64,000 nucleotides of DNA from Selaginella moellendorffii. Lineage: Eukaryota > Plantae > Lycopodiophyta. Below the pieces are notes generated by a model. The model saw nothing but the letters and a program-made list of their open reading frames with translations. It made no database searches and was not told where the DNA came from. Of this stretch, positions 4,400-27,857 are shown in pieces. The DNA lies in NCBI RefSeq assembly GCF_000143415.4, contig NW_003314299.1:1223502-1287501 (forward strand). The letters are read 5' to 3'. How positions within the stretch are numbered: the first letter of the stretch is position 1; the number at the start of each line of letters is the position of its first letter. Both the position numbers and the translations under genes were made by a program.

Positions 4400-5300
4400 A
4401 AAACGAGCAATGGCACCACGTTGAGCTGTTCTTCTTCTGTGAGTTTCGAGATTGGACGTAGTATTTCAAGCGACTTTCGTAACTTCAGCTCGTTTCGCTA
4501 TCGCAAACTCTGAAAGGTATATAAATCTAAATATATGTCGAAGAAGAGTGCTCTTTACATCTCCGAGAAGTGCATCGTTTATTTGTGGCTCCACATACCA
4601 GACATCGCAAACGACTACCCAGGACAACATCAGCTTCAGCTAAACGAAAAAAAAAACTGAAAGTCAATCGTGATGAAAAGTATAAACTTAGTGTGGACAA
4701 TTATCTTGTTTTACTTTGCAGACAGTGAAATCCAGTTCGAATACAATCTGCAAAATCGAGCGCAAGGAAATAAGAACTGCCTGGAGAAACTACGAAATCA
4801 AGAACCTGCTTGAACATCACATTGTCCGCCTTGTTCAGGCAAGTCCCCTCTGCAAAAATGAGCAAAATAGTGCTTTCCGGATCGCTTCCGTCCCTTCTGA
4901 AGCTTGGTTTTACTTTCCAGCTTGCTTTTCGTCTCAACTCCATTGCTACGCACAGCAATCCCCTGCGGATGATCGATCGCAGCCTTCCACTGCTTTTCTG
5001 GAAACTATCACAACTTAAAAGCGGTGTTACGCCACAGACTTTCACCTGAAGAAGACGGTTTCTTCCTCGCAGCGTACTAACCACGCTCCACTGCTTCCCC
5101 TGCTTCCTGAAAACGAGTACAGTGGGACTTGGGAAAATAACGAGAGAAAGGAGCTCCGGCAACGAGTTCCGTTACATGCCTTGTGACTGCCAGGCTCTCA
5201 TAAACAACAGTTGAGCTACCGTGAGACACACATACCTGTGGTTGCTTTCATTATAGTAGCCCGATGCACATCTTTACCAGAGTATCCTGTCCAAAAAAGA
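4400..5300 (-). pseudogene. Degenerate GPAT9-like (glycerol-3-phosphate acyltransferase) pseudogene
   Basis: LLIFAEGTCLNKADNVMFKQ, ELDFTVC, NKIIV and DVWYVEPQ match GPAT9 motifs (LLIFPEGTCVNN..VMFKK, ELDCTVC, NKIFV, VWYLEPQ) but are separated by stops and frameshifts; boundaries approximate. Confidence 0.65.
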
Positions 5301-6071
5301 AGGACAAGGAGATGAACAAAGTCGCTCAGACTCTGAGAATGCCAGCGAGAATGCGGCCATCGTTCCCCGTAGCGTTTTCATGCTATCCCGCCTGCAAAGC
5401 CGCCCCCATCCTTGAGAATCCCCCGGACCCGGACAGCAGCTTCCTGCCCAGCGAAAGAAAATGTTTGACGAATACCTGACGCTCTGCCAGCAGCTGGTCC
5501 TGCAAATCCTCCTCCACACGGAGCCGCGCCAGCGTGCGTGCGCAAGTCGTGAAGAAGTTACTGCACAGACCACAAACTGTCCTGCGCGACTCGCTCGGAC
5601 CGCTCGACTCCTGTATCCAGGTCAAGCCGTGCTCGTTAGTAAGCTCGCTACTCGCTTGAGATGTGTATCGCTAACACCGCCCCGTGGACATCGTTGAGGG
5701 AATTGAGCTGGGGCGAAACTTCTGGCAGCAGATGACACGAGCAGGACATCGTAAGAGAAGCAAGCCGATCATCACCTGAATGCTCTTACCATGTAGGCTG
5801 TAGAATCGGAGGTGACGTTCGTGCCAGAGGAGACTCAAACATGATCAAACCATCAGAGCAAGTTCCCCCAAACTTCTCCAAATCAAGTCACCTGAAAGGC
5901 GCAGCGGCCCGAGTTTGGGATCCGGTAACATGCTACATTTGCCAACACCTGGAATCTTCATGATGGAAACGCGATAGCCATCGATTTACCGTGACAGCCA
6001 GCCTGGAGCCGAGAAGCATGAATCCCTGGAGGGACAAGTAGAGGCGGTGCTGCAGCTCCCGGACCGATCGC

Positions 6072-6102
<31 letters not shown>

Positions 6103-6925
6103 CAGCACGATTAGGCATCTGGAGACGAAGATCTCCAGAGACCAGGGAAGAAGTGGCATATTGTTTTGCAGCCGCCCAAATGCGAACACCAAGCAAGAAT
6201 GTATGCTCGCTAACCTCGTCATTGATGCTTCTACACGTCTCAGCTATGGGGCTCTCACGAGCTTGTCATGTGATTACGAAAAGCTTTTGGCGTTGACTTA
6301 CAAGCAGAAAACACAATCGTTCTCGTCATGCTATAAATGTATAATCACCTATTTTATAGAGGATCATATTATTTGCACAAGATAGTACTGCCCTTCAAGT
6401 TATCAATTTCAGAACTGAACAAACAAAAGCGATAAGAAGCAACATTCCAGACTGGCAACAACATCAATGATACTTCAGGGAGAATCAACTCACTCTGTCT
6501 CATTTTTACCTGTTGAGGTTGCATTTCCTGCAAGATCATCATAGGGTTATCACTTTGTTCATTGTGCCCATTGTCTTAGTGGCTCCTTTCATAGCACCAG
6601 CAACAGAAAGGTATTGACATACATCGCCTAAACAACAACACTGGGCTAGAAAAACTTCCTACAAGTTCAATAGGAAAAAGGGAGCCAAAGAAAAATCTCT
6701 GTCACTTGAGCTCGACTGCCCTGGAACTTTTGAATGTGCCGCCACAATCTGATCAAATGCTGTCCGAAGTTCGTCGTTGCGCTGAAAGTCGATTCCTGAA
6801 AAACAAAAAACAATTTTTCTGAGCACTGCCTTCTTTCGTGGACATGAGATCGCTTCCACGTGTCGTTCGTGTCGACTTTCTTTTAGGCTTTTGGCTGGCT
6901 GACGTAATATGGGTTAGGGCTGGTG

Positions 6926-7933
6926 ATGGAGCACGTAGATATCCTTTTGAAGCTTCCTGGGCCGAGTCTCTTGAGAGCCAGAGCTGTTTGCAAGGCTTGG
7001 AAAGAAGTAATTGATTCTCCATGGTTTTCAAACCGCTACAGGGATCCATCGCCCTACATATTATTGCCATCGCCAAACCAAGAGGGCTTGCCCTTGTGTA
7101 ACATATGCCACTTGGTTCTGGGTAAGTGGTTCAAGTTGGAATTTCCATCTACGTATATCCAGTCGGTCTCTCAGTCCGGGCTGGTGCTGGTCCGGGAAGG
7201 CAGAGTTTTTTGGGTGGGGAATCCATTCTTCAATAAGTGGAAACGGTATAGCTTAGAATTGCCATATGCGAAATTTGATCATGAGCTTGCAACTCTAGCG
7301 GATGATGAGCAGGGCTATCGAGTAGTATTTCGGGTGCGTAGGTTTATGCAAACAGCAGTCCTCTACTCTTGGAAGTCAGAGTGGCTCGTCACAGAGGAAC
7401 GTAAGGAGGATATCAAAATGGAGGATTTTGCGGATTTTGTCACATCCTCTTCCACTGTTTGTGGCAACATCATCCATTCCATCGGGTCCAAAAACAAAGT
7501 GGCACTACTAAGTTGTCGTGTAGACAATGGCAAGGTTCTTTCGCTCCGCTACTTGAAGCTGGGATCTGAAGTACTTGAAGGGCGTTTTAAGCTCTTTGGT
7601 TGGGATGGCAAGCTCTACTTGCTGGGAGAAAATGACAGTCACTTATTTGGACTGTTTGAAATAAGAGGAGAGAATGTAGTTCTGATAAGCTGGGCACCAG
7701 AAAGCATTTCTACAAAATTTCCCTTCGTAAGGTCGGCAAGCATCTACAACAATACTATCTACTGCATTTTTCAAGTGAAGCTAGCAATGCTAGTAACTTA
7801 CAACCTCAGTAAACATGGTTCGTGGCAGGTGGTACCACTTCCAGAACCATTACCTCCGTGCATTGGAATCTTAAATATTGTGAAGTTTAGTTTAGACTTA
7901 CCGTTTGGGTTAGACTTGTGTAGTTCCTATTGA
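6926..7933 (+). CDS. Intronless F-box protein (copy A)
   Basis: N-terminal ILLKLPGPSLLRARAVCKAWKEVI F-box, then SGLVLV...WVGNPF..KW typical of F-box-associated beta-propeller regions. Confidence 0.88.
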   Translation: MEHVDILLKLPGPSLLRARAVCKAWKEVIDSPWFSNRYRDPSPYILLPSPNQEGLPLCNICHLVLGKWFKLEFPSTYIQSVSQSGLVLVREGRVFWVGNPFFNKWKRYSLELPYAKFDHELATLADDEQGYRVVFRVRRFMQTAVLYSWKSEWLVTEERKEDIKMEDFADFVTSSSTVCGNIIHSIGSKNKVALLSCRVDNGKVLSLRYLKLGSEVLEGRFKLFGWDGKLYLLGENDSHLFGLFEIRGENVVLISWAPESISTKFPFVRSASIYNNTIYCIFQVKLAMLVTYNLSKHGSWQVVPLPEPLPPCIGILNIVKFSLDLPFGLDLCSSY

Positions 7934-8473
7934 TTTTCTTTTTCTCCTCCACACCTTCTGTCTTGTGAGATATATTTTAAGGTGAAAGGTTGTTATGAAG
8001 GCAAATCATACACATTTCTAAATAATTTTCTGTGACACTGGAAACTCACTTCCACCATGACAGCCTGCTGATCCAAGAGAGTTTTTTTTAACTGCCATTA
8101 AAAGGTGCTTGAAAGCTATTGTAGAAGAACCAGTTAACCTCTTATTATAGACAAAGTGGCCTGTCCAACAGCTTTTCGGATTGAGAAATTTTCGTTCCCA
8201 CTATAAATCTCATCCAGGCCGAGCATTGAGCACAGAATAAGGCCCAGCACTGGAAATGGCGGTGCTATCCGAAGGAATAATTTTGCAAAACCTTTACTCC
8301 TAAAATGTTAGAAACATGGTGTTAAGAATAAATAGGACAAAGGAAAATAAATGTGAACGATAACATGGATCATGGTCAATCTCCCTTGCGGGAGGCTTAC
8401 TTCCAAGCCTCTTTAGCAGAAATTATGTCTTTTGAGTGGACAAGTTGTCAGAGTTTCGGTACAGTCCTACCAT

Positions 8474-8710
8474 TTAGATCTGTGATAGATGGTAATCAAT
8501 CACGTCAATATATAGGCTAAAGAGGGCTGAGGAAAGCAGGCAGCCTTGCTTTAACCCAATGGTGTTGGTGATTGAGCAAGGATAATGTTGTATAGTGCCT
8601 AGATTATATCTCGGGTGTCCCCCGATAAGCTTTGTCTTGGGACTGTATCCAAGGCTTTCTTGAAGTTTACGAAGCAATATATCTGCTTGTGTGTGTGTGG
8701 TGCATAGCAA
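8474..8710 (-). mobile_element. LINE RT fragment (second copy)
   Basis: Identical to 607-843. Confidence 0.7.
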
Positions 8711-9380
8711 GTGATCCGCGCAATTGTATTATCGCCAGAAACCCGTCACACATTTCCCTTTCATTCTCTTGCCCTTCTTTTCAGGAGCCATGCTCGCAAT
8801 TTAAGAGAGAAGACAAAAAGCAAAAAACAAGAATCAAGAAATGAACTCAACATAAGACGCACCAATGGATGTGACATGTGATCTTATCATATGAGAATTC
8901 TTGCTTTCCGGGCCGGGCTGTGTCCAGGAGTTCTCGTGGATGCCCTGATGGATCTGTTGGAGGTGATCAAGCTCTCGTGGGAGATGGTCAATCCTCTGAA
9001 AGCCAGGCCAGTTTCGAGGAGGCCTGCTGCTGCTCATGGCAACAAGGACTACGGCTACTACTACTGCTACAGTTGTTGACAGAATGACTCTCAGTGTGTT
9101 ACGAAAAGGCTCTGCAGAGATTGGAAATGGGTGTGTCTCCCAAGCGTTGGAGCTCGAATCGCCCACGTCCGCCCGCACAACAAATCTCGTGTCCAACTTC
9201 TGAGCAAGACTACCATCTTTCAGATGTAGATTGATCTCTTTATTCAAGCCAGAACGAGGCCGGGGTTGGTGCGAGCATGCCAAGCGTATGCATTCTCTAG
9301 ACAAAGCGATTGGCCGTACCGATCTCTCAAACGAGATCCAGAACAAGATCAGCAGCCGGATGTGGGAGGAGGTGGCCGGT

Positions 9381-10406
9381 TTACAGGCTGCAGCCACAAG
9401 GATGCTTGAGCTGCACCACAACCACCGTCTTGTTGTCTTCGACACTCATGGCTTGCATGCTATCACAGAAGAAGGCAAGTTGCATGGCCTGCCCAACACT
9501 AGATTCTTTCTCTACCAGCCAGTCGTGGATGCTGGGACAAATGCTCTCAACGCACTCCCGCGGCACACCATCTGATGCCAGCACCAGAAACTCACAGCCC
9601 CCATCACGGCGGAGATCAATTTCCACAACGTCGGGAAGAGCCACTACCGCCTGCTCATCACGTCCCAAACCAGCGTTGCTCTTCCATCTAAAGTCTCCCA
9701 GAGATCGCGTCACCTGGAGCCCCATGGCGCCAACCTCGCCCCCAACGCTCACGCCATTCAGCTGGATCCACTTGTTCTTCATGACGACCGCACCAGCTCT
9801 AGTCGCACGCTCGGCATCGTCCGGCCGCGACTGGACGTTATGATCGATCGTCACTGGCACCGCCTGGTTGTCCCGCCAGATGATGCAATAGCTATCGCCG
9901 GCGTGAGCGATAACGAGCTTGTCATCGCGGACCAAGACGGCCACTGCGGTCGTCCCGTGAGAGCCAGGCGACGTTCCCGTGATACTGTTCCAGGAGTACA
10001 AAGGCGATGTGTTTTCGCGCTCCAGCCTCTCCAGCTCCTCGGTTCCTGCCTTGGATTGCATCATTTCGTCCATCTTGAGGAAAACCTCGCGGAATCCAGA
10101 AGCAAAGTCGCCCTTTTTGTAGTGTGAACTGGCGACGAGGTGCCTGTGGAGATTCCGCGCGCAGAAGCGCGCCGCAGCGCAGCCGCCGTGGCCGTCAAAG
10201 ACCGCAATGAAGGAGCTCTTGGCGTCCAGGTCGGGGATCACAGTGTAGACATCTTCCATCCTACGCTTGGCACCTTGAGTCGCTGCGGCACCCACCCTGA
10301 TCCTGGAATTCTCCACCACCGCCTTGTGGACTCGATCTGGCTTCCAATTCCTGAACATGCCAAGCGGATCATCATCGCGGGCAAGCCCAGCGCTTGCTCT
10401 CTTCAT
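9381..10406 (-). CDS. Intronless PP2C (second copy)
   Basis: Protein identical to that of 1514-2539. Confidence 0.92.
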   Translation of the reverse strand: MKRASAGLARDDDPLGMFRNWKPDRVHKAVVENSRIRVGAAATQGAKRRMEDVYTVIPDLDAKSSFIAVFDGHGGCAAARFCARNLHRHLVASSHYKKGDFASGFREVFLKMDEMMQSKAGTEELERLERENTSPLYSWNSITGTSPGSHGTTAVAVLVRDDKLVIAHAGDSYCIIWRDNQAVPVTIDHNVQSRPDDAERATRAGAVVMKNKWIQLNGVSVGGEVGAMGLQVTRSLGDFRWKSNAGLGRDEQAVVALPDVVEIDLRRDGGCEFLVLASDGVPRECVESICPSIHDWLVEKESSVGQAMQLAFFCDSMQAMSVEDNKTVVVVQLKHPCGCSL

Positions 10407-10594
10407 GTCCTAAAACCCTAATGTCGGAATTTGGGAAAAGGGAAAGAGAGGGGATCTTGTGGCATATTCTACCCCTCCAACAAATCAGGAGCTAAAGAAA
10501 TAATAAAAGTGATTTGGATAATGTACCGTATAAACAATAGAACCAAGGGAATATACATAGGGCATACTTATATATACCAATGCTTGAAAACATG

Positions 10595-11491
10595 CTAACC
10601 TTGAGAGAATGCACGCCTGCAAGCATTATTGGCGATCGCCAGGTTCCCTCTTCGTGCCTCGCGCATAAACGCTACCTCGAAGTGCCTCCTTGCAAGCTTT
10701 CCTCGGCGATCCTGTCCCCGTAGTGGCAAAACAAGCTCAAGGAGCTCCAAATCCCGTACGACTGCGTCCTCCAGCTCCACTGCCCCGATTCTTCCCCCGG
10801 GGAGGATCTCCTGGGTCACAGGCGTGCACATTCCAAAGTCTACAAGCCAGACCTTGTCGCCTGAGAGGTAGAGCTCGATGTCGCGAAACCTCACCCCGAG
10901 CGTGAATGCCATGTGTGCCATGACGGTTCCCAGCGCCGCAGCTACCTTGCGCCTGTCGAGCTCCGGGAAGACGCGTTCTGCAACCACACAAGAAACAATG
11001 GGCTTCATTAGTAGCGTGGCATTGTGGATTTTAAACGCAGGATCTTCGTCGAGGCTGTAGATCCAGCCGCGGTCCTTGATCTCCTCGGGAGATAGGGCAT
11101 TTTGCCCCTCCAACATCCCGTCTACCAGCGCGGTGAGCTGCTCCTGCTGGATAGCCGGCATCTTCTCCATGACCATGCACGGTTTGTTGTGGAGCTCGCC
11201 CTGACACCTGAAAACCAAAGCGTGAATGTCCTCGTTCATGTGTGCAGTGCGCTCAAGAAGCGCCCTCCCACTGGGTGCAAAGGCAAACACTTTGGGGACA
11301 CGCAAACAGGCCACGTCTGGGTAGTCACGACTTAACCTCTCGATTGCGTCCCTATACAAACCCATGGCGTGCACCTCCGCCTTGAGGTTCGCGTACGAGG
11401 TATTGTCTCCTATCAACCGCTTGATGGCGTACTCCCCACCAAAGATCAATCGCCCATTGTTTCCGCCATCGCGCCCCGCCATCCACGCCAT
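10595..11491 (-). CDS. Atypical kinase-like protein (second copy)
   Basis: Identical to 2728-3624. Confidence 0.7.
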   Translation of the reverse strand: MAWMAGRDGGNNGRLIFGGEYAIKRLIGDNTSYANLKAEVHAMGLYRDAIERLSRDYPDVACLRVPKVFAFAPSGRALLERTAHMNEDIHALVFRCQGELHNKPCMVMEKMPAIQQEQLTALVDGMLEGQNALSPEEIKDRGWIYSLDEDPAFKIHNATLLMKPIVSCVVAERVFPELDRRKVAAALGTVMAHMAFTLGVRFRDIELYLSGDKVWLVDFGMCTPVTQEILPGGRIGAVELEDAVVRDLELLELVLPLRGQDRRGKLARRHFEVAFMREARRGNLAIANNACRRAFSQG

Positions 11492-12266
11492 CGCGACGCC
11501 AATCGAGCCGAGCGGAGGTGCCCTAGGGTAGCAAGCCGAGCGCTCAAGAAAAGAAGAAGAGAGCCTAGCAACGTGAGCGAGAGAGAGAGAGAGAGAGAGG
11601 AGGGTATATATATAGTAGAGAGATGGTCTCATTGTGCCACGTGGCAGGAGTACCGTTGGCCGTTGTTCTTTTGCTTGCCGATGTGGCGGATGCCTGCCAG
11701 GTGGGAAGCTGCGATTCGGTACTAGCGGGAGAAAGAGGAGGGCCTACATTGTGCCACGTGGCAGGAGTACCGTTGGTCGTTTTCTTTTGTGTAGAGCACG
11801 TTTAGGTTAAAGGGAGCTTGCCGATGTGGCAGATACGTTTAGGTTAACAGGGGCTTGCCGATGTGGCAGGTGTTTTGCCAGGTGGGACGCTGCGATTCGC
11901 TATTTGGGGCAGCACACCTTTAGCTTAATTTCTGCCTTTAGACATCACCTAGCCCTAACTGGACTATAAGCGAGACTTCCATTCTTTCTTTCGGGCGTTT
12001 ACTTCTTCACGCTTTTCAACGCCATCCAGCAACTTTTGGGTCGATCTGACAGTTGAAATCCGCAGATATGGCCCGACAAAACGTGTTGCTGTCTGATCAT
12101 ACTGGCTTTGAATTTGTCTTTGTTCTTAATCTTCTTAGCATGATCTAGGGGAGTTTCTGGCCCGTGGAGGAAAAACCCGTAGGCTACAGGCTTTCACGCA
12201 AAATTTAGAGAAAACAAAGCAAGAATCTTACATAATCCGGACTTGCGGACACTCATGTTGATTTGG

Positions 12267-13167
12267 AAAACGAGCAATGGCACCACGTTGAGCTGTTCTT
12301 CTTCTGTGAGTTTCGAGATTGGACGTAGTATTTCAAGCGACTTTCGTAACTTCAGCTCGTTTCGCTATCGCAAACTCTGAAAGGTATATAAATCTAAATA
12401 TATGTCGAAGAAGAGTGCTCTTTACATCTCCGAGAAGTGCATCGTTTATTTGTGGCTCCACATACCAGACATCGCAAACGACTACCCAGGACAACATCAG
12501 CTTCAGCTAAACGAAAAAAAAAACTGAAAGTCAATCGTGATGAAAAGTATAAACTTAGTGTGGACAATTATCTTGTTTTACTTTGCAGACAGTGAAATCC
12601 AGTTCGAATACAATCTGCAAAATCGAGCGCAAGGAAATAAGAACTGCCTGGAGAAACTACGAAATCAAGAACCTGCTTGAACATCACATTGTCCGCCTTG
12701 TTCAGGCAAGTCCCCTCTGCAAAAATGAGCAAAATAGTGCTTTCCGGATCGCTTCCGTCCCTTCTGAAGCTTGGTTTTACTTTCCAGCTTGCTTTTCGTC
12801 TCAACTCCATTGCTACGCACAGCAATCCCCTGCGGATGATCGATCGCAGCCTTCCACTGCTTTTCTGGAAACTATCACAACTTAAAAGCGGTGTTACGCC
12901 ACAGACTTTCACCTGAAGAAGACGGTTTCTTCCTCGCAGCGTACTAACCACGCTCCACTGCTTCCCCTGCTTCCTGAAAACGAGTACAGTGGGACTTGGG
13001 AAAATAACGAGAGAAAGGAGCTCCGGCAACGAGTTCCGTTACATGCCTTGTGACTGCCAGGCTCTCATAAACAACAGTTGAGCTACCGTGAGACACACAT
13101 ACCTGTGGTTGCTTTCATTATAGTAGCCCGATGCACATCTTTACCAGAGTATCCTGTCCAAAAAAGA
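12267..13167 (-). pseudogene. GPAT9-like pseudogene (second copy)
   Basis: Duplicate of 4400-5300. Confidence 0.65.
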
Positions 13168-13933
13168 AGGACAAGGAGATGAACAAAGTCGCTCAGACTC
13201 TGAGAATGCCAGCGAGAATGCGGCCATCGTTCCCCGTAGCGTTTTCATGCTATCCCGCCTGCAAAGCCGCCCCCATCCTTGAGAACCCCGGACCCGGACA
13301 GCAGCTTCCTGCCCAGCGAAAGAAAATGTTTGACGAATACCTGACGCTCTGCCAGCAGCTGGTCCTGCAAATCCTCCTCCACACGGAGCCGCGCCAGCGT
13401 GCGTGCGCAAGTCGTGAAGAAGTTACTGCACAGACCACAAACTGTCCTGCGCGACTCGCTCGGACCGCTCGACTCCTGTATCCAGGTCAAGCCGTGCTCG
13501 TTAGTAAGCTCGCTACTCGCTTGAGATGTGTATCGCTAACACCGCCCCGTGGACATCGTTGAGGGAATTGAGCTGGGGCAAAACTTCTGGCAGCAGATGA
13601 CACGAGCAGGACATCGTAAGAGAAGCAAGCCGATCATCACCTGAATGCTCTTACCATGTAGGCTGTAGAATCGGAGGTGACGTTCGTGCCAGAGGAGACC
13701 ACATGATCAAACCATCAGAGCAAGTTCCCCCAAACTTCTCCAAATCAAGTCACCTGAAAGGCGCAGCGGCCCGAGTTTGGGATCCGGTAACATGCTACAT
13801 TTGCCAACACCTGGAATCTTCATGATGGAAACGCGATAGCCATCGATTTACTGTGACAGCCAGCCTGGAGCCGAGAAGCATGAATCCCTGGAGGGACAAG
13901 TAGAGGCGGTGCTGCAGCTCCCGGACCGATCGC

Positions 13934-13964
<31 letters not shown>

Positions 13965-14779
13965 CAGCACGATTAGGCATCTGGAGACGAAGATCTCCAG
14001 AGACCAGGGAAGAAGTGGCATATTGTTTTGCAGCCGCCCAAATGCGAACACCAAGCAAGAATGTATGCTCGCTAACCTCGTCATTGATGCTTCTACACGT
14101 CTCAGCTATGGGGCTCTCACGAGCTTGTCATGTGATTACGAAAAGCTTTTGGCGTTGACTTACAAGCAGAAAACACAATCGTTCTCGTCATGCTATAAAT
14201 GTATAATCACCTATTTTATAGAGGATCATATTATTTGCACAAGATAGTACTGCCCTTCAAGTTATCAATTTCAGAACTGAACAAACAAAAGCGATAAGAA
14301 GCAACATTCCAGACTGGCAACAACATCAATGATACTTCAGGGAGAATCAACTCACTCTATCTCATTTTTACCTGTTGAGGTTGCATTTCCTGCAAGATCA
14401 TCATAGGGTTATCACTTTGTTCATTGTGCCCATTGTCTTAGTGGCTCCTTTCATAGCACCAGCAACAGAAAGGTATTGACATACATCGCCTAAACAACAA
14501 CACTGGGCTAGAAAAACTTCCTACAAGTTCAATAGGAAAAAGGGAGCCAAAGAAAAATCTCTGTCACTTGAGCTCGACTGCCCTGGAACTTTTGAATGTG
14601 CCGCCACAATCTGATCAAATGCTGTCCGAAGTTCGTCGTTGCGCTGAAAGTCGATTCCTGAAAAACAAAAAACAATTTTTCTGAGCACTGCCTTCTTTCG
14701 TGGACATGAGATCGCTTCCACGTGTCGTTCGTGTCGACTTTCTTTTAGGCTTTTGACGTAATATGGGTTAGGGCTGGTG

Positions 14780-15787
14780 ATGGAGCACGTAGATATCCTT
14801 TTGAAGCTTCCTGGCCCGAGTCTCTTGAGAGCCAGAGCTGTTTGCAAGGCTTGGAAAGAAGTAATTGATTCTCCATGGTTTTCAAACCGCTACAGGGATC
14901 CATCGCCCTACATATTATTGCCATCGCCAAACCAAGAGGGCTTGCCCTTGTGTAACATATGCCACTTGGTTCTGGGTAAGTGGTTCAAGTTGGAATTTCC
15001 ATCTACGTATATCCAGTCGGTCTCTCAGTCCGGGCTGGTGCTGGTCCGGGAAGGCAGAGTTTTTTGGGTGGGGAATCCATTCTTCAATAAGTGGAAACGG
15101 TATAGCTTAGAATTGCCATATGCGAAATTTGATCATGAGCTTGCAACTCTAGCGGATGATGAGCAGGGCTATCGAGTAGTATTTCGGGTGCGTAGGTTTA
15201 TGCAAACAGCAGTCCTCTACTCTTGGAAGTCAGAGTGGCTCGTCACAGAGGAACGTAAGGAGGATATCAAAATGGAGGATTTTGCGGAATTTGTCACATC
15301 CTCTTCCACTGTTTGTGGCAACATCATCCATTCCATTGGGTCCAAAAACAAAGTGGCACTACTAAGTTGTCGTGTAGACAATGGCAAGGTTCTTTCGCTC
15401 TGCTACTTGAAGCTGGGATCTGAAGTACTTGAAGGGCGTTTTAAGCTCTTTGGTTGGGATGGCAAGCTCTACTTGCTGGGAGAAAATGACAGTCACTTAT
15501 TTGGACTCTTTGAAATAAGAGGAGAGAATGTAGTTCTGATAAGCTGGGCGCCAGAAAGCATTTCTACAAAATTTCCCTTCGTAAGGTCGGCAAGCATCTA
15601 CAACAATACTATCTACTGCATTTTTCAAGTGAAGCTAGCAATGCTAGTAACTTACAACCTCAGTAAACATGGTTCGTGGCAGGTGGTATCACTTCCAGAA
15701 CCATTGCCTCCGTGCATTGGAATCTTAAATATTGTGAAGTTTAGTTTAGACTTACCGTTTGGGTTAGACTTGTGTAGTTCCTATTGA
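14780..15787 (+). CDS. Intronless F-box protein (copy B)
   Basis: Differs from copy A by 3 amino acids (D>E, R>C, P>S). Confidence 0.88.
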   Translation: MEHVDILLKLPGPSLLRARAVCKAWKEVIDSPWFSNRYRDPSPYILLPSPNQEGLPLCNICHLVLGKWFKLEFPSTYIQSVSQSGLVLVREGRVFWVGNPFFNKWKRYSLELPYAKFDHELATLADDEQGYRVVFRVRRFMQTAVLYSWKSEWLVTEERKEDIKMEDFAEFVTSSSTVCGNIIHSIGSKNKVALLSCRVDNGKVLSLCYLKLGSEVLEGRFKLFGWDGKLYLLGENDSHLFGLFEIRGENVVLISWAPESISTKFPFVRSASIYNNTIYCIFQVKLAMLVTYNLSKHGSWQVVSLPEPLPPCIGILNIVKFSLDLPFGLDLCSSY

Positions 15788-16339
15788 TTTTCTTTTTCTC
15801 CTCCACACCTTCTGTCTTGTGAGATATAGTTTAAGGTGAAAGGTTGTTATGAAGGCAAATCATACACATTTCTAAATAATTTTCAGTGACACCGGAAAGT
15901 CACTTCCACCATGACAGCCTAAGAAAGTTTTTTTAACTGCCATTAAAAGGTGCTTGAAAGCTATTGTAGAAGAACCTATTATAGACATCGGATTGAGAAA
16001 TTTTAGTAAAAATGAACTAAAAGAAGAAATGGAAAAAACTACAAGATCTTATAACCCAAAAGCATAAATATATTCACCATATTTAATTAGCCCAAAATCC
16101 CTAGTTTAAACACAGTGGTTCTACATTAATATTAATAAATGGCATTATAGCCATACATACACACAGGATCAATCACAGGACACACAAAGCATTGGAAAAG
16201 GTCAAAAGTTATCTGGGAGCCGAAATGCAGCACCAGCGCCACACTGTAGACAGAGCTTTTACTTTTAGAAAATCTCAATATACAGAATTTTTAAAGAATC
16301 AGGAAGATGCATGCGGAGCTATGCCCAAATATGAAAACT

Positions 16340-18241
16340 CTACTCTTGCAGGTTTTGAGGGATGAGGCTTTGCAGGAACTCTAGGAACTCTAGGACGTGC
16401 TGAGGCGAATCAAGGCAGCAGAGTTCTCCGTCATCGTTTCTCCGAAACCAGGTGCGTCTGATCACGTCCACTACGTCTTGTATGACAACTGCAACAAAAA
16501 GAGAAAACCAAGCATAACTTATAGCATGCGCTGGGAGATTGATAATCACTCACGTCGCGTGCCTGCATCTGTAGCCTCTGTGTCTGCCAAAGTGAACGAA
16601 TGTGAGGATGGCTACAGAGACTTAACCATAAACGCTACCTTGGGACGCACCAGAGTCTTCCTCGTTGTTTATATCTGCACCTAAGATATAAGCATGCCAC
16701 ATACTGAACGAAAAAGACCGAAACAAACCATTGTTCGCAGTAGCCTCGGCAGGATCGATACTTCCTTGGCGTGCTTGTTCGGACAAAGATGACTCTTCCA
16801 CCCTGTTTATATCTGCAACTAGAACCTAAGTATGTCACGAACTCCACAAAACAAATCGAGACAAACCATTGTTCGCAGTAGTCTCGGTTCTGGACGCACC
16901 AGAGTCTTCCACTGTGTTTACATCTGCAAGTAAGGCATAAGCATGTCACATAATCAACGAGACAAACCATTGCTCGCAGTAGTCTCGGGTGGATCGATAG
17001 TTCTGGACGCACCAGAGTCTTCCACTGTGTTTACATCTGCAAGTAAGACATAAGCATGTCACATAATCAACGAGACAAACCGAAACCGAGACAAACCATT
17101 GCTCGCAGTAGTCTCGGCTGGTTTGATAGTTCTGGACGCATCAGAGTCTTCCACTGTGTTTACATCTGCAAGTAAGACATAAGCATGTCACAAACTCAAC
17201 GAGACAAACCGAAACAGAGACAAACCATTGCTCGCAGTAGTCTCGGCTGGATTGATAGTTCTGGACGCACCAGAGTCTTCCACTGTGTTTACATCTGCAA
17301 GTAAGACATAAGCATGTCACAAACTCAACGAGACAAACCGAAACCGAGACAAACCATTGCTCGCAGTACTCTCGGGTGGATCGATAGTTCTGGACGCATC
17401 AGAATCTTCCACTGTGTTTACATCTGCAAGTAAGACATAAGCATGTCACATACTCAACGAGACAAACCGAAACTAACCATTGCATGGCTTAGACTCGACA
17501 GGAACGATAGTTTCTACAAACAAACAACAAGATGATTCAGAGAAGACGCGATGAACAAAAGCAAAGAGAAAAGAATACAGAAGAGAAATGATATACCTCC
17601 ATCGATGGTAGCTCTTGCAACCTCGCTAGAAGCTGGTGAATCCACGGACTCTGGACAAAAACAACACAACGCGTCAGGGATTCAAATAATCTATTCACGA
17701 AACCACAAACATCACATACCGGCTCCTTGATTTCCTTCCACCGTAAAAAGCATAAGCGAGCAATCGATCATCATACCTCCATCGGAGCTGGAGCTAGGTC
17801 CAGAAGACGACGCATGCGCATCACTTGATCCAGAAGAGGCTAGAGGAGAATCTACACGATGCAAAGGCGTCAGATCGAGACGAGGAATCAGAAGATTCAC
17901 ACGAGAGGACGCATGATCTACACCTCCTGGACGAAAGATTACGAGATATTTCTTGTCATCGCGCGACTTACCAGCGCCATCGCTCTCGTCGGAAGTGTCT
18001 GCGGCAAGAAATTTCCAAAATACGTGAGATACAAGCACAGATCGATGAGAATTTCACTGACCGGTGCGCGTCTGGCACAAATCGACCGAAGTGTTGCAGC
18101 TCCCGCCGCAATCGTTAGCGCTCCCTGCAAGAACACCAGAGATCTTCGAAAATCCAGACAAGGCGAGGCACTACCAATGCAGCGCCAAGCGAAGGAGAAG
18201 AGCAGCACAAGCGCAACCCAGGAAACCCTATAAGACGCCAT
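16340..18241 (-). CDS. Predicted secreted Ser/Thr/Asp-rich orphan protein encoded by a micro-exon gene (~325-330 aa, 16-17 exons)
   Basis: Exons 18241-18175 (signal peptide MASYRVSWVALVLLFSFAWRCIG), 18124-18062, 17998-17972, 17926-17903, 17851-17777, (17734-17720, uncertain), 17650-17597, 17513-17478, 17423-17355, 17294-17226, 17165-17097, 17036-16968, 16923-16867, 16812-16729, 16674-16639, 16583-16554 and 16488-16340. All have AG/GT boundaries and join into one stop-free frame. TATATAAA at 18281-18274. Confidence 0.75.
16639..17477 (-). repeat. Tandem array of exon+intron units with a 129-bp period
   Basis: Unit tctggacgcaccagagtcttccactgtgtttacatctgcaagtaag... recurs; exon ends at 17355, 17226, 17097 and 16968, plus three diverged copies. 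Confidence 0.95.
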
Positions 18242-18532
18242 TCTCTTTGCGACGTTCTTCAGCGGAAGGGTCCTTTATATAGCGCTGGGATGAGCGGGAA
18301 AAATCCGAAATCAAAATGATCCAGGAATATGCTAATCGCCGACGTGGCATTTGCGAAACAGGAAGAAGGGATGAGTTAAGCTAGCTTTTCTACCGGAGGA
18401 ACGATCTTACCTCAGATAAATTCTTCGTCTACGCATTCTCGCCAATGCCGGAGCTCGATCCTTCGTGCCCATCGCTTGCTGTTAAACCCTAAAATAACAA
18501 TAGGGGAGAGGAGATTAATTTCGGGCTAGGTC

Positions 18533-19428
18533 ATGGCGCCCGCCAAGCCAGGCGATGCGGCATTCGCGAATGTGGATCATGTGGTGAGCTGCTAAATCTT
18601 GGATCTAGAAATTCGTGGAGCGCTCACTGTGTCTTTGTGGTTTTTTCTCGATTCTGTCCATCCTGGATCAAGAATGCAGAGCTTTTCACTCTCACCTATG
18701 GCGCCATGGTCCGGCAGCTCCTCACGGACTTCGAAGACGTGGAGGAAGTGAACAAGCAGCTCGACACCATGTAAGGCCCGAGCATTTCTCTTTTTTCTTT
18801 TTTTGTTTTCATCCCCTTCTTCGTTTGCTAGCATTGATAAGAATTTCTGTGTGTTTCTTTCTCTCTATCAGGGGATACAACATTGGAATTCGCTTGATCG
18901 ACGACTTTCTCTCCAAAGCCAACGTCACAAGGTGCTCAGAGTTTCGAGAGACCGCAGATGTCATTGCCAAGGTTCCTGGTGTTCACAACTCTCGAAACTT
19001 TGATCGCTGGACTCTAAATTTTTTTTCCTTCGATCTCTTTCGTGGGCAGATTGGATTTAAGATGTTCTTGGGAGTGACTGCCACCGTCTCCAACTGGAAC
19101 GCCGATTTCACCGAGTGCAGCTTGGTTCTCGATGACAATCCCCTCGTGGATTTTGTGGAGCTCCCGGAGACTTGCCAGGGCCTCTACTACTGCAACGTCT
19201 TGTGTGGAGTGATCCGCGGAGCTCTAGAAATGGTAAACAAAAGCTATGCTTTTCCTTTCCAGCCTCGTATTAAGTGTCTTCTTTCTTCGCTTGTTCTCCT
19301 CGCAGGTATCCATGAGAACCGAAGTAAAATGGGCGCGGGACATGCTTCGTGGGGACGATGCGTACGAATTGAGGCTAAAGCTCATCGAGCATGTCGCGGA
19401 AGAGTATCCGTACAAGGATGACGATTAA
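18533..19428 (+). CDS. BET3: TRAPP complex subunit BET3/TRAPPC3 (spliced)
   Basis: NAELFTLTYGAMVRQLL, GYNIGIRLIDDFL, DNPLVDFVELP, YCNVLCGVIRGALEMV, EEYPYKDDD*. Confidence 0.95.
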
Positions 19429-19646
19429 ACATGCGTTCAATGTGTTTAATGGATCATGTGGTTCGATTTAAACAACTTGAATTAAGAAAAGCAAAGGAAA
19501 AACTATTTAATCAATCTCCGCATGTTATACACAAAATCAACTCTTTCAATAGGAGCGGTGCCATGCAAATATAATCTTCACAATGGAATCTTCTTATATA
19601 TGTAACGTTTACCTTGAGCTAGGGCGAGTTATTAGGGTTCTTGGAA

Positions 19647-19968
19647 ATGGAGGACGAGGAGCGTCAAAACATGGAGCGCTTCAGCACGGAGGGCGATTTC
19701 GTGGATGGTGAGTGGATCGACGGTGAGTTCTACTACCGGAGCCGCCGGAAGAGGCGGGGGCAGACCAAGGAGGAGGCGCTCTACGGCTACCAGTCGTCAG
19801 GGTCGGATTCGGATGGAGGAGGAGGAGGAAGAAGGGGCAGGAAGAAGCGGCGGGGCGGGATAATCGTCGAGGACAAGTCGAGCAAGCCCGTGAATTTCGT
19901 GTCGGCGAGCGTCCAGGACGTGGGCACTGAGAATCAGGCATCGTCGTCCTCTAGGAAAGAGATGGAGG

Positions 19969-19999
<31 letters not shown>

Positions 20000-22487
20000 G
20001 CCTGGCGCCGGGCTGGGATTTCGAGCTAGTAGCCGGGATAGAGGAAGCGATGAGGGCGATGAGCGAGGTGGTGTTGGGCTTGGCTTTCAAAGGGGAGGGA
20101 TTGGTTTCCAGGCTGATGGCGATGAGCCTGGTGGTGCTGGAACTGGTTTCCAGAGGGGAGGAATTGGTTTCCAGGCTAGCAACGAAGAGGGCGATGATCA
20201 GGCTAGGAACGAAGATGGAATTGGAGGACGAGGTGGACTTGGTTTCCAGAGAGGAGGAATTGGTTTCCAGGCTAGAAGTGAAGATGGTGATGGACGAGGT
20301 GGCGTGGGGCTTGGTTTTCAAAGGGGAGGAATTGGCTTCCAGGCTAGAAACGGGGATGCCGATGGACGAGCTGGTGTGGGACTGGGTTTCCAAGGTAATG
20401 GAGCTGCGAGTGCCGGGGACGATGACGATGGGGATCTGGAGCTGCCGAGTGCTCTGGGAAAGAAGATCCAAGAGAAAGTCCGGCAGAAGACAAAGAAGAA
20501 ACCCGGAGGCCCAGCTTCTAGTACCTCTGTTGAGTATGTCTGGCAGAAGCACACCAGCGAATTTACCAACAAGATGATGTCGAAGATGGGATTAACTGGT
20601 GGTACCGGCTTGGGAAAGAACTTGCAAGGCAGGGTGGCGGCGATTGAAGTGAAGTTGAGGCCCAAGAACATGGGGATGGGATACAATGACTTTCAGGAGG
20701 TGACGACGGGTCGTGATGATCCAGCAGCAGCGACAGAAAGCGAAGAAGTGGCCCATAGGTCGAGAGCAAACGAGCAGCTCTGGATGAAGAAGAACAAAAA
20801 GAAGGCAAAAACTTTCGTTTCAGCCGAGGAGCTCTTGTCACGGCAGCAGGGAAGAACAGTTGGCAAGGTTTTGGACATGACGGGGCCACAGGTGCGCGTT
20901 GTCACGGACATGAAGGACCTCAACGCCGAGAGAATGGTTGTCGAGGAGGACGACACCCCCATGCCGGAGCTCCAGCACAACTTGAAGCTCCTGGTAGATC
21001 TCGTTGCTTCGGACATCCAGCAGTACGACTCCAGGCTCAGGCACGACAAGCAAACCATCGCCATCCTTGAGAAGGACCGGGACCGGCTGCAGAAGGAGCT
21101 GGAGCTCCAGAGCAGGAGCCTCGAGGTGATGCACTCGATCACTTCCGCCATCGAAGGTGTCCAGCAAGAAGCTGCGTCGCGGAGGCTAACTCTAGACGGC
21201 CTGCTCAAAACCTTCGCCAAGCTCAAGGCCGAGTTCCCGGAGGAGTACAAGCTCTGGAACCTTTCAGCTCTGGTGCTGTCTCACGCGGCACCGAGGATCA
21301 CGTCTCACTTCCAAGCATGGCAGCCGCTCCTCCAGCCGTCCCGAGGTGTCGACGTTCTCCTTCCGTGGATGGAACTCCTCCAGGAGCAGGAGGAGGAGGC
21401 GATCTTCACCGAGGTGGACTCTTCTCCGTATACTCGCCTGGTGATGGAAACGGTGCTGCCGCATATCAACCGTGCGGTGATCAACTGGGAAGCTCGAGAG
21501 CCGGAGCCGCTCCTCCGGGTGCTCGAGGTGTGGGAGAAGCTCCTCCCAGCGTCGGTGTTCCAGAGCGTGCTGGACAGCTGCGTGATGCCCAAGCTGCGAG
21601 CTCAGGTGGAGGCGTGGGATCCATTGCAGGACACGGTCCCGGTTCACCACTGGGTGCATCCCTGGCTGCCGCTCCTCGGCTCGAGGATGGACCCGGTGTG
21701 CGATACCATCCGGTGGAAGCTAAACAGCGTGCTGCAAGCCTGGGATCCCAGTGACGTTTCGGCCTACTTGATGCTCTCGCCGTGGCACTCGGTGTTTGAT
21801 GCGGCGAGCTGGGAGCAGCTCCTGGCACGGAACATCGTCCCGAAGCTAAAGGTGGCGCTCGAGCAGCTGGAGATCAACCCGGCACAGCAGCGGCTGGAGC
21901 CTTTCTCGTGGGTGATGGCCTGGGCTCCGGTGATGCCGCTCCGTCTCATGATCCGGATGCTGGAGGAGAAGTTCTTCCCGAAGTGGCACCACGCGCTGTT
22001 CGCATGGCTGGGATCCAACCCGGACTTTGACGAGGTGACGCAGTGGTACCAGGGGTGGAAGTCGGTGCTGCCGGCGGAGCTGCTGGCCAACGATCGCGTA
22101 AGGTGGCAGCTCAACGGGGCGCTGGAGATGATGAACCAGGCGGTGGAGGGGGCGCCGCTGGTGATGCGCGACGCGGAGCAGTGGCAGCAGCAGTTTGTGG
22201 AGAAGAAGTTCGCGGCGGTGGCGGTGGCGGTGGCGGAGGCGGAGGCAGAGATGAGCTTGAAGGAGGTGGTGGAGAGCTTCGCGCAGGAGAAGGACGTCCA
22301 GTTCTTGCCAAAGCCGGGGCGGCTGCACCAGGGGCTCCAGGTTTATGGATTTGGATCGGTGAGTATCGCGGTGGACAATCACAAGCAGGCAGTCTTGGCT
22401 CAGGCTGGGCAGAAGTGGACGTCCGTGTCGCTGGAGCAGCTGCTCGAGATCCACCATGCTCGAAAGGGTGGCAAGTGGAACTCTTGA
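19647..22487 (+). CDS. STIPL1: Septin/tuftelin-interacting protein (TFIP11/NTR1/STIPL), G-patch spliceosome disassembly factor; single exon
   Basis: DGEWIDGEFYY..QTKEEALYG, G-patch KMG..G.GLGKNLQG, PMPELQHNL, GCFC region, VQFLPKPGR..GLQVYGFG. Confidence 0.93.
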
Positions 22488-22843: not shown

Positions 22844-25800
22844 ATGGCTGCCTCGCTCTCGCGGAATTCGTCCGGCCGGGCGGCAGCAGGATTATTGCCC
22901 TATCCAGCCAAGTTCCACGTCGCGGCGGCCTACGCGGGCTTCTCAGCTGACGACGACGACTACGAGAATGTGGCTCTCCCGCTCGGATCGCTCTTCACGC
23001 CAGAGATGGCGCTGCTCTTGTATGGGCTCTATATGCAGGTATGGATCTTCGCCATGCTGGATCGGCAGCTAGATCGCTTGCCCTGGAAATATTTCGGTGT
23101 AATCCTCTGGAATTTTGGGATCCAGGCCACGGTCGGGCCGTGTACAGCTGCGAAGCCTCGGATGTGGAATACCCAGGAGCATTTCAAATGGAAGAGGTAT
23201 AGCTTGAATTTGGAGAGAGTTGGGCTTTAACGTTTCCTTTAGTTGGAGCGAGTTTAAAGAGTTGCCATCAATTGAAGCTATGCGGCTCTTCGTTAGAACC
23301 TTGGAAGTAAGTGTTTCGATGTTTTTTCGAGAGTTTCCATCGATTTTCCTTTGCAGGAACAAGATCCAGACTGGTATTTCAAGTCGCAAGGGAGCGAAGT
23401 TGAGGCAATTGGCGAAATGGTAAGAACGCTTTACATGTTTTTCGTTTTTGTGTTAGGAACTTTAACTCTGCTGCATTCTTTCAGCCTGTGCAAGACAATG
23501 ATTTAAATCCAAGTCTTCAAGAGGAGGACATCCCCGCTGTAAACAATTCTCCTCCATCTCCCCCGCTGCCATCAGCAAATGGTGGGATCGGCACGGAGGT
23601 GAAAATGGAAGAAAACGATGTCGAGTGCTCCACTATTATGGAGATTGATGTTCGCAACGAATGGCTTTCACCTCTGGTATCTGGACGACGACCAGCAGCT
23701 CGCTATCAGGTTTGTCTTTCATATGTGGGAAACTAGATCAAGAACGCTATAAACTTTGGTCTTTGCGCAGCATGCAGCAGCGGTTGTACACGATAAGATG
23801 TTCGTGATTGGAGGGAACCACAATGGCCGGTACTTGAACGATGTCCAGGTATGTAGATTTTCGCTCACTAATAACTGATGTTGGAATTTTCGTCATAGGT
23901 TCTCGATCTAAGAACGCTCACCTGGTCCAAAGTTGAGCAAAAGCTCCCAACGTCTCCTTTGTCGTCGTCCATGCCTCCGATCCCTTCAAATCAGATTTTG
24001 TCACCCTGTGCCGGTCATAGCCTGGTAATTTTTCTAGCTTTATACTTTCATCTTACATTCTTCCTGAGTGTTTTTCCAGATTCGGAAGAACAGGATGCTG
24101 TTTGTTGTGGGTGGCCACTCGAAAAACTCCCCCGACTCTGTCTCAGGTTAATGTAATGCAGAGGAACTTTGAGATCCATCTCACTTCAGTGCTCTCTATC
24201 TCCAGTTCATGCTTTTGATACGGAGACTTTCACTTGGTCGCTTTTCCCAACGTATGGACAAGCTCCGGTACGTGTGACATACGGTATCACGACAAGATTG
24301 ACCATTCGCTGTTTGTGGTGCTCAGATCGCGAGAAGGGGCCAGTCCGTTTCACTGATCGGATCCAACTTAGTCATGTTTGGTGGAGAAGACTCCAAAAGG
24401 CGTTTGCTCAATGACCTCAACATCTTTGATCTGGAAACAATGACATGGGAAGCTGTCGATGCAATGTAAGTCGTTTGGTCTTGCTTGTTTGTATCTATAT
24501 CCTTCACTTTCAGAGGACCGCCTCCATCTCCTCGTGCCGACCACGCTGCAGCGGTCTATGCTGGTCACTACCTATACATATTTGGGGGTGGCTCACATTC
24601 CAGCTGCTTCAGTGACTTGCATGTTCTGAACTTGAAAACGGTAGGCTTGATGCATTGCTCCTTTGAACTTATGGATTCGTGACTTCAGATGGAATGGTCC
24701 CGCAAAGAGACTGAGTATACACCCACGCCTCGTGCAGGCCATGCTGGCGCAACAGTTGGTGATTTGTGGTACATTGTTGGTGGAGGGGACAATAAATCTG
24801 GTAAGTGTATCGTCCATTTTATGTTTGTTTTAACTTCTCCTGTACCATGTCCTATACCAGGGATTTCCGAAACGATTGTACTGAACATGAAAACGCTTGA
24901 CTGGTCACTTGTAACTTCTGTGCCTGCACGGACGTATATCGCATGCGAGGTATGACATTTTGATTGTCCTTGCCGGCCTTTTTCCGATTTTATTGGTCAT
25001 TTTCTGTCCTGCCTAGGGATTGAGTCTCGTCTCCGCGTGTTTGAATGGCGAAGAAACTTTAATAGCCTTTGGTGGCTACAACGGAAAATACAGCAATGAG
25101 GTTTGTTGTTTTTTTCTTTTTTGAGACTGTGACTTGTATTGAGGTGGAAGCTTTCAGATGCATGTCCTGAAGACGGGCATAAGCCAATCAAAGGCGTCTC
25201 CAGCTCCAAGTTTTGGTGGCAGCCATTTTACGGAGGTTGGAGAATCTGCAGACGTGCCCGAGAGCTCAATAATTTCGAAGGAACCAGTAGATCATCAGCC
25301 TACGCCTACGGTATCATGTTTTTACGCGTCTCCATGTTATTTACTGTTTCTCTTTTCTTTCCAGGAGAATGGCGGCTACAACACTCCAAAGTTGCTGGAG
25401 CTTAAACGGGAGCTTGAGGTGGCTCTAACGTCATGCCAAGACGAAAATAACAAGCTAAAGAGCGAGCTGTCGATCACTACGAACGATCTCTCCATGGTCT
25501 TTCTTCGTTTTGTGCACGAAACGTTAGTTCTACAATTTCTCTTTACTGTGCAGGAGTTGCAGTCAGTTCGGGGCCAGTTCGTGGCCGAGCAAACGAGATG
25601 CTTCAAATTGGAGGTAAAGTCAGCCTGCAAGAGAAACCTGTCCCGTAACCTTGCATTTTCTTTCTCCAGGTCGAAGTCGCAGAGCTGAGGCAAAAGCTCC
25701 AGTCCATGGAGGCGTTGCAAAAGGAGGTGGATTTGCTACGACGGCAAAAGGCTGCCTCGGACCAAGTCGCGGCCCAGCTCGTCCAGCAGAAGCAAAACGC

Positions 25801-25867
25801 CTCTGGAGGTATGTGGTCGTGGCTCGCAGGGACTCCCGGCGAGGGAGGCAAAGTTTTAGATTCCTGA
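22844..25867 (+). CDS. ACBP4: Acyl-CoA-binding protein with kelch repeats (class IV, ACBP4/5-like), multi-exon
   Basis: YPAKFHVAAAY, LLLYGLYMQATVGPC, kelch motifs (GGNHNGRYLND, PSPRADHAA, PRAGHAG), coiled coil, GMWSWLAG. Confidence 0.92.
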
Positions 25868-27857
25868 AAGAAAGCTTAGCTGCACGAAGGAGAGAAAACT
25901 TAAAAACCGTGACGATGAGAAGTGGAAAAAGAAGCTCGGCTTCGAGATTTTGTGGTAATGCGAGGTAATGGTTTTTTCCAAGCTCTAGATCGTGTTAACT
26001 CGTTAGATTCCAGGCCGTTTTATAAAGATATTAATCGGTATTTTTTAGCGAAGCCATTGAACGCTGTGTAACATTGGCGGTACAGCAAATAAATTTTCAT
26101 TCCTTTCGTGCTGAGAAATGTCAAAGCTGAAATATTAGATCAAATATATGCTAAGTTGATTATTACTTTTGTTTAGTCCTATTATTGTTTTTATTATTAT
26201 AATATTGGACCTTAAAGGTCCAAAAATTTAATAATTGGTTCTTATACGGCATCGTAGCCGTACACCATCGTTGGCCTCCATATAAAAATTCCAAAGAGTG
26301 CAAGCTAGCGAGCCATTGAAAGGTGTGTATCATCCATCGGCCATGGAAAAGTGAAAAGAAACTCCTATCATTCCTTTGGATCTTTCGTGCTACAGCGAAG
26401 AACGCAAACTCTCTTGGCATGATCTTTGTCTCGTATCATTGGCTCTTTTCATGCGGATGCTCGAAACTTTAATAGCCTTTGCTGGCTACAACGGAAAATA
26501 CAGCAATGAGGTTTGTTGTTTTTTTCTTTTTTGAGACTGTGACTTGTATTGAGGTGGAAGCTTTCAGATGCATGTCCTGAAGACGGGCATAAGCCAATCA
26601 AAGGCGTCTCCAGCTCCAAGTTTTGGTGGCAGCCATTTTACGGAGGTTGGAGAATCTGCAGACGTGCCCGAGAGCTCAATAATTTCGAAGGAACCAGTAG
26701 ATCATCAGCCTACGCCTACGGTATCATGTTTTTACGCGTCTCCATGTTATTTACTGTTTCTCTTTTCTTTCCAGGAGAATGGCGGCTACAACACTCCAAA
26801 GTTGCTGGAGCTTAAACGGGAGCTTGAGGTGGCTCTAACGTCATGCCAAGACGAAAATAACAAGCTAAAGAGCGAGCTGTCGATCACTACGAACGATCTC
26901 TCCATGGTCTTTCTTCGTTTTGTGCACGAAACGTTAGTTCTACAATTTCTCTTTACTGTGCAGGAGTTGCAGTCAGTTCGGGGCCAGTTCGTGGCCGAGC
27001 AAACGAGATGCTTCAAATTGGAGGTAAAGTCAGCCTGCAAGAGAAACCTGTCCCGTAACCTTGCATTTTCTTTCTCCAGGTCGAAGTCGCAGAGCTGAGG
27101 CAAAAGCTCCAGTCCATGGAGGCGTTGCAAAAGGAGGTGGATTTGCTACGACGGCAAAAGGCTGCCTCGGACCAAGTCGCGGCCCAGCTCGTCCAGCAGA
27201 AGCAAAACGCCTCTGGAGGTATGTGGTCGTGGCTCGCAGGGACTCCCGGCGAGGGAGGCAAAGTTTTAGATTCCTGAAAGAAAGCTTAGCTGCACGAAGG
27301 AGAGAAAACTTAAAAACCGTGACGATGAGAAGTGGAAAAAGAAGCTCGGCTTCGAGATTTTGTGGTAATGCGAGGTAATGGTTTTTTCCAAGCTCTAGAT
27401 CGTGTTAACTCGTTAGATTCCAGGCCGTTTTATAAAGATATTAATCGGTATTTTTTAGCGAAGCCATTGAACGCTGTGTAACATTGGCGGTACAGCAAAT
27501 AAATTTTCATTCCTTTCGTGCTGAGAAATGTCAAAGCTGAAATATTAGATCAAATATATGCTAAGTTGATTATTACTTTTGTTTAGTCCTATTATTGTTT
27601 TTATTATTATAATATTGGACCTTAAAGGTCCAAAAATTTAATAATTGGTTCTTATACGGCATCGTAGCCGTACACCATCGTTGGCCTCCATATAAAAATT
27701 CCAAAGAGTGCAAGCTAGCGAGCCATTGAAAGGTGTGTATCATCCATCGCCCATGGAAAAGTGAAAAGAAACTCCTATCATTCCTTTGGATCTTTCGTGC
27801 TACAGCGAAGAACGCAAACTCTCTTGGCATGATCTTTGTCTCGTATCATTGGCTCTT
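25053..27857. repeat. 1410-bp-offset tandem duplication (25053-26447 and 26463-27857)
   Basis: Identical ORFs at +1410; only 2 substitutions seen; 15-nt filler at 26448-26462. Confidence 0.95.
26463..27277 (+). pseudogene. Promoterless duplicate of the last ACBP4 exons
   Basis: Begins in mid-exon and carries the coiled-coil and C-terminal exons only. Confidence 0.75.

Follow-up and report, generated by a model that had tools for sequence, protein, structure and literature searches.

The minus strand between positions 16340 and 18241 of the 64,000-nt stretch of Selaginella moellendorffii DNA analysed here (contig NW_003314299.1, hereafter the window) carries LOC9658980, a real, annotated and uncharacterised orphan gene for which RefSeq holds ten isoform models (X1–X10). 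Its isoform proteins are XP_024539439–48, and all nine that were retrieved could be placed exactly on the window. A sequence-only reading of this DNA had presented the gene as hidden, wrongly, as RefSeq already annotates it; the spliced minus-strand gene that it proposed has been borne out by stranded junction reads in two runs, by contigs and by RefSeq and JGI models. All 17 of its proposed exon segments (E1–E17) were found at the lengths given, bordered by AG and GT and in phase 1, and they join into the stop-free frame that it had announced, of 330 amino acids. Exon segments have a higher G+C and a lower T content than most introns. The RefSeq models carry 13 of the 16 proposed introns, and every intron in the nine mapped isoforms is in phase 1. 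The list of micro-exons did not survive whole: its 75- and 15-nt exons belong to one 132-nt exon and its 24-nt exon is unsupported, for reasons given below. A TATA-like box does lie before the ATG, as claimed (Table 1), but RNA represented in the contigs of another study (X1) reaches at least to 18302, beyond the box, which is therefore not the sole start.

Table 1. Features of LOC9658980 in the window. Read counts are given for two runs (first + second); X1 contig denotes an assembled contig of study X1.
Feature	Position	Strand	Evidence and remarks
TATA-like box	18274..18281	-	40 nt above ATG; sequence
Exon 1, coding part, 67 nt, signal-peptide-like	18175..18241	-	joint E1|E2 in 6+1 reads; hydropathy
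Exon 2, 63 nt, phase 1-1, three Cys	18062..18124	-	joint E2|E3 in 7+4 reads and X1 contig; all RefSeq models
Stop-free alternatively spliced block, 279 nt	17720..17998	-	database models, read depth
Exon 3, 27 nt, 5′ part of 279-nt block	17972..17998	-	X1 contig stops at its donor; donor in allele models P0010, P0011
132-nt exon (75 + 42 'intron' + 15)	17720..17851	-	depth 12 at 17761, unbroken contig, all 16 models
Exon of 54 nt, phase 1-1	17597..17650	-	reads, RefSeq
36-nt exon, truncated repeat-family member	17478..17513	-	joint E7|E8 in 7+1 reads; similarity to repeat exons z 2.4-4.6
Tandem array of homologous intron+exon units, 129-bp period	16639..17477	-	self-comparison, RefSeq, read joints
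Array exons of 69 nt	17423-17355, 17294-17226, 17165-17097, 17036-16968	-	
Array exons of 57, 84 and 36 nt	16923-16867 (57 nt), 16812-16729 (84 nt), 16674-16639 (36 nt)	-	
Alternative acceptors in array	16911, 16818	-	RefSeq models
Exon of 30 nt, phase 1-1	16554..16583	-	joints E15|E16 in 6+6 and E16|E17 in 5+4 reads
Last coding exon, 149 nt, 48-aa tail, Cys-Cys pair, predicted helix	16340..16488	-	reads, structure model
3′ UTR	to about 16237	-	

RNA evidence across 16000–19500 came from two stranded raw runs (X18 and X19) and from the contigs of study X1. LOC9658980 is transcribed from the minus strand at a low level (about 53 and 25 reads, each of 9.2 million, as estimated from depth), roughly 1/15–1/20 of that of a neighbouring gene arranged head-to-head with it. 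Eight of the proposed joints are backed by stranded reads, all in phase 1. Besides the joints in Table 1, that from 17720 to E7 was seen in 4+0 reads and a contig, that between 69-nt repeat exons in 4+4, that from an E12-like exon to E14 in 5+3 and that from E14 to E15 in 7+2 reads, and three further joints are less well supported. An artefactual gene model, in which AG/GT pairs were read into a non-coding tandem repeat, could draw on the fact that introns 4 and 5 as originally proposed were indeed read into coding sequence; it is refuted by the spliced stranded reads of two raw runs, alongside which stand the contigs of a third study and independent JGI and RefSeq models, and we consider it exceedingly improbable. 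The head-to-head neighbour (18436–19440, plus strand) encodes 184 amino acids, has four introns in phases 0, 2, 0 and 0, and is, we presume, similar to BET3/TRAPPC3; a minor acceptor at 18679, 7 nt downstream, is used in about 4–5% of its reads and shifts the frame. Minus-strand reads across 18340–18690 overlap the 5′ end of this neighbour, with a depth of up to 2.8 in X19, and may represent either LOC9658980 transcripts that start inside the neighbouring gene or antisense RNA.

Full-length database-protein and N-terminal queries matched LOC9658980 and LOC9644991 / SELMODRAFT_423843 only, the latter on a separate scaffold with 92–94% identity to LOC9658980 in aligned columns. The S. moellendorffii assembly is known to contain two haplotypes and, because between one third and one half of the reads in single samples carry LOC9644991 letters, we read LOC9644991 as the second haplotype (allele) of LOC9658980. 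When the last exon was used as query against all representatives, the sole genuine match was P0001 (XP_024539445.1, isoform X7 of LOC9658980); P0002 and P0003 were rejected as chance matches, unrelated in sequence and inflated by repeats. Outside S. moellendorffii, no homologue was found among 1.8 billion representatives and 5.8 billion clusters, leaving one locus with two alleles, an orphan status to be read against the thin sampling of lycophyte proteins. Pfam returned no family for single exons or for P0001, in keeping with the earlier failure to recognise one; the ESM Atlas gave no match at or above 0.8 and structural similarity reached a TM of at most 0.41. A metagenome scan yielded no relative of the protein, a length-limited protein search with the last exon, uninformative by design, returned nothing, and none of the papers searched names LOC9658980 or LOC9644991. 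The automatic names 'dentin sialophosphoprotein' and 'mediator subunit 26' attached to these loci reflect low-complexity matches.

The proposed exon list and the data part company in the block 17998–17720, which most models treat as one exon of 279 nt. Introns 3, 4 and 5 had been drawn here with lengths of 45, 51 and 42 nt; as all three are multiples of three and free of stops, the letters alone could not decide between intron and coding sequence. The 42-nt 'intron 5' (17776–17735) is retained in 16 of 16 database models and, because its read depth is that of an exon (12 at 17761 in X18) and an X1 contig (17720–17852) runs through it without a break, the flanking 75- and 15-nt segments form one exon of 132 nt. 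None of the 16 models splices from the donor proposed for intron 4 (17902), and the 24-nt exon as drawn is therefore unsupported. Internal splices of the block that keep the frame, all in phase 1, remove 45 nt (isoform X2 of the allele), 72 nt (X6, and X3 of the allele) or 120 nt (a JGI model of the allele). Depth across 17872–17971 is about 1–2, against 7–12 on exons (X18), and this part is mostly spliced out or is different on the other allele. In-frame alternative splicing within the block is likely, and the block is exitron-like in that stop-free introns with lengths of 3n lie inside an annotated coding exon and are alternatively spliced, according to the database models and, in part, to depth. 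As in plant exitrons (PMC10985678), these internal introns fall in a disordered region; in contrast to them, the spliced forms here seem to outweigh the retained form (X18). On the other haplotype, allele proteins P0008–P0010, P0016 and P0018 carry a different, shorter peptide at the position of 17852–17902, where an extra small exon of the allele is possible. A loose end of an X1 contig before 17851 was considered as a new exon of the LOC9658980 allele and rejected, as it equals coding sequence of the second allele.

RefSeq lists at least 10 isoforms for LOC9658980 and 6 for LOC9644991. Some leave out exon 9, exon 14 or exons 11 and 12 together, and the models further include three internal splices and two alternative acceptors; every one of these events is in frame. 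Such a list would fit programmed diversification in the manner of micro-exon genes (MEGs) or tropoelastin, in which phase is kept uniform so that splicing gives a ladder of secreted variants, for instance against microbes or for tuning of the wall; the sequence-only reading had gone as far as to suppose that any subset of exons could be skipped, giving a combinatorial set. Further points in favour of this explanation are the three weakly supported read joints, an excess of non-synonymous differences among the repeats (five columns, against one synonymous) and a gap in X19, where coverage of 17638–17871 (the 132- and 54-nt exons) is near zero against up to 12 reads in X18. This gap (naive binomial 0.004; Fisher's test on joints p = 0.09; post hoc, on about a dozen fragments) is either sampling noise or a real skip, and gives a hint in favour of the latter.

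Against this stands the difference in repeat content between the two haplotypes, the allele LOC9644991 having four long repeats but lacking the 57-nt exon. The only raw-read candidate for a skip, the joint E12|E14 (16968 to 16812), was rejected as a skip of exon 13: it is explained by the allele without the 57-nt exon, and its frequency matches that of second-allele letters in exons 12 and 14. A Thr-to-Leu change of the allele is visible at 17027–8 in 4 of 11 and 2 of 7 reads. The joint E11|E13 of an X1 contig was also dismissed, being part of an assembled contig within near-identical repeats. Once haplotypes are allowed for, no allele-independent skip is present in the raw reads of the two runs (about 53 and 25 reads). 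The RefSeq skip isoforms are likewise located in near-identical repeats; their novel junction peptides recur partly or wholly in the ordinary, constitutive protein of the other allele (nine k-mers for X3 and X4, four for X5 and 7/7 for X4 of the allele), and several may be products of cross-mapping between alleles. This doubt weighs less on three other events: the exitron-like block, a 6-nt tandem acceptor (16818) present in models of both alleles, and the omission of the 84-nt exon in X7. Skipping among near-identical repeats would alter length more than sequence, the gene is single, without a family and expressed far below its neighbour, and multi-exon skipping is rare in S. moellendorffii (59 two-exon and 24 three-exon events; PMC5310277). 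Modest in-frame isoform variation is likely, whereas a combinatorial ladder of isoforms from LOC9658980 is unproven and free skipping of any exon subset finds no support; programmed diversification strikes us as unlikely. A variable-surface-protein class, marked by a regulated in-frame ladder from one allele, by fast amino-acid change and by LOC9658980 being one of several unrelated all-phase-1 Selaginella orphans, is a distinctly doubtful proposition. A regulated skip ladder, if true, would be unusual for plants, in which intron retention is the prevailing form of alternative splicing and several exons are seldom skipped together, and would provide a testable model of splicing-based variation in a wall or surface protein. 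The locus also carries a caution that RefSeq isoform lists for repeat-exon genes in a heterozygous assembly can be inflated.

Much of the uniform phase has a simpler source. Introns 8–14 are mutually homologous, as are exons 8–15, and in the array of 129-bp period they are tandem copies of one exon-plus-intron unit, adjacent homologous exons being accompanied by homologous introns in the same phase. Because seven introns were copied in tandem, about eight phase-1 introns are independent rather than 16. Against the plant background of 22% phase-1 introns, the chance that eight independent introns all fall in phase 1 is about 5e-6; at a background of 50% it is about 0.004, and the uniformity is beyond chance. 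Of the G letters in the CDS, half occupy codon position 1, and G is the last letter in 12 of 13 exons; the composition of an acidic protein therefore favours phase 1. Older duplications that are no longer visible, or selection for skippability, may have added to the uniform phase. The idea that the introns have a palindrome or a stable hairpin in common was also considered and rejected, intron folds being weak.

The architecture had been said to define the schistosome MEGs. As described in the two reviews whose definition we used (PMC8293314, PMC4015677), MEGs are built mainly of exons of ≤36 nt, which make up as much as 75% of the CDS, and comprise 72 genes in many families with sequenced skip variants. 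LOC9658980 resembles them in its signal-peptide-like start, its small symmetric internal exons (all introns in phase 1 across nine isoforms and the read joints), its orphan, putatively secreted product and the possibility of in-frame isoforms. In contrast, it is one locus with matches only in S. moellendorffii, it has no sequence relation to MEGs, whose skipping has been sequenced, and its four or five exons of ≤36 nt make up 13–15% of the CDS; because this share is so far below 75%, LOC9658980 is not a MEG. Nor is the architecture specific to MEGs, since tropoelastin and disordered proteins built from duplicated symmetric exons have it too, so that its status as a defining MEG character is unsupported. 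In tropoelastin all splice sites are of phase 1:1 and replicated exons are separated by short introns (PMC12554196), in a secreted, disordered, low-complexity protein; the two are not homologous, and tropoelastin is hydrophobic, lysine cross-linked and proven to be extensively spliced, whereas the LOC9658980 protein is acidic and its extensive splicing unproven. Human disordered proteins are assembled preferentially from symmetric exons by tandem duplication, and calpastatin, tau and the secretory calcium-binding phosphoproteins share this mechanism and exon symmetry with LOC9658980 (PMC3632108), but are animal proteins of known function rather than a plant orphan. In its workings LOC9658980 is closer to a disordered gene of tropoelastin type, on a small scale, or of repeat-exon type than to a MEG. 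Its product is not a hydroxyproline-rich wall protein such as an AGP or extensin, which are Pro-rich with Ala/Ser/Thr-Pro or Ser-Pro repeats; it has 4% Pro and no Pfam match.

The protein itself has the acidic, Ser/Thr-rich body that was first described (S+T 24%, D+E 18%, K+R 5%, Pro 4%), with one N-glycosylation sequon and Cys clustered at both ends. A mucin-like glycoprotein, as first supposed, would bear dense O-glycosylation along a Ser/Thr-rich stalk; Ser and Thr here amount to 24% only. Hydropathy marks residues 1–22 as hydrophobic, in agreement with the proposed signal-peptide start, and the product is probably secreted. A single-sequence structure model is of low confidence throughout, with helix at the termini only and 272 of 332 residues at pLDDT <50; the mean pLDDT of 43, weak evidence of disorder by itself when no alignment is used, is joined by a second prediction (0.44) and by composition in pointing to a mostly disordered product. 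Allele letters in the reads change six codons and leave one silent, while two coding variants of the neighbouring gene are both silent; in these small numbers, as in the repeat columns (5 non-synonymous, 1 synonymous), there is no sign of purifying selection on the amino-acid sequence. Exon lengths change only by multiples of three, and an intact frame of 315–378 amino acids is preserved on either haplotype. An intact frame and the bulk properties of the protein (length, charge and disorder) would then count for more than its sequence, as expected of an apoplastic spacer or matrix protein.

An orphan gene of recent origin and close to neutral, transcribed from a bidirectional promoter that belongs to the housekeeping gene next to it and with little or no protein function, its repeats and weak splice sites drifting, would account for the missing homologues, for the relaxed amino-acid sequence and for low expression at a head-to-head distance of some 200 bp from a strongly expressed gene. 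Neither the intact frame and signal-peptide-like start of both haplotypes nor length changes confined to multiples of three would be expected of it, and orphan status may equally stem from poor lycophyte sampling and fast divergence; we regard this explanation as quite unlikely. The reading that we hold to be probable is that LOC9658980 is a gene specific to the S. moellendorffii lineage, encoding a loosely constrained, secreted and disordered protein, very acidic, rich in Ser, Thr, Asp and Glu and with short Cys-bearing ends, that has grown by duplication of class 1-1 exons. Unequal crossing-over would copy a class 1-1 exon together with its intron, extending the body of the protein while each copy inherits phase 1, and the G-starting codons of an acidic protein would bias the remaining introns to the same phase. 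Changes that break the frame would be purged and the amino-acid sequence only loosely constrained. Variation in length would be mostly genomic, through copy number between alleles, supplemented by modest in-frame splicing (the exitron-like block, tandem acceptors and occasional skips) that is tolerated rather than programmed. The product, perhaps cross-linked by the Cys at its ends, could serve in the apoplast as an O-glycosylated or cation-binding spacer or as a gel-like matrix protein; we know of no animal-type GalNAc O-glycosylation in plants. So understood, LOC9658980 offers a clean plant example of a disordered, probably secreted orphan protein grown exon by exon, with a copy number unlike between the haplotypes of one plant.

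Tandem duplication is also found elsewhere in the window. Positions 2–8131 and 7869–15976 form a near-perfect 7.87-kb tandem duplication (99.5%), either recent or an assembly artefact, whose ORFs we take to be PP2C-like, kinase-like and F-box-like. A 1.4-kb tandem duplication inside a gene (25053–26447 and 26463–27857), with 99.9% identity, is possibly an assembly artefact. Between these lies an intronless ORF of 948 amino acids (19641–22487, plus strand), presumably similar to the TFIP11/G-patch splicing factor, with Gly-rich repeats of 21–72 bp at 20051–20393.
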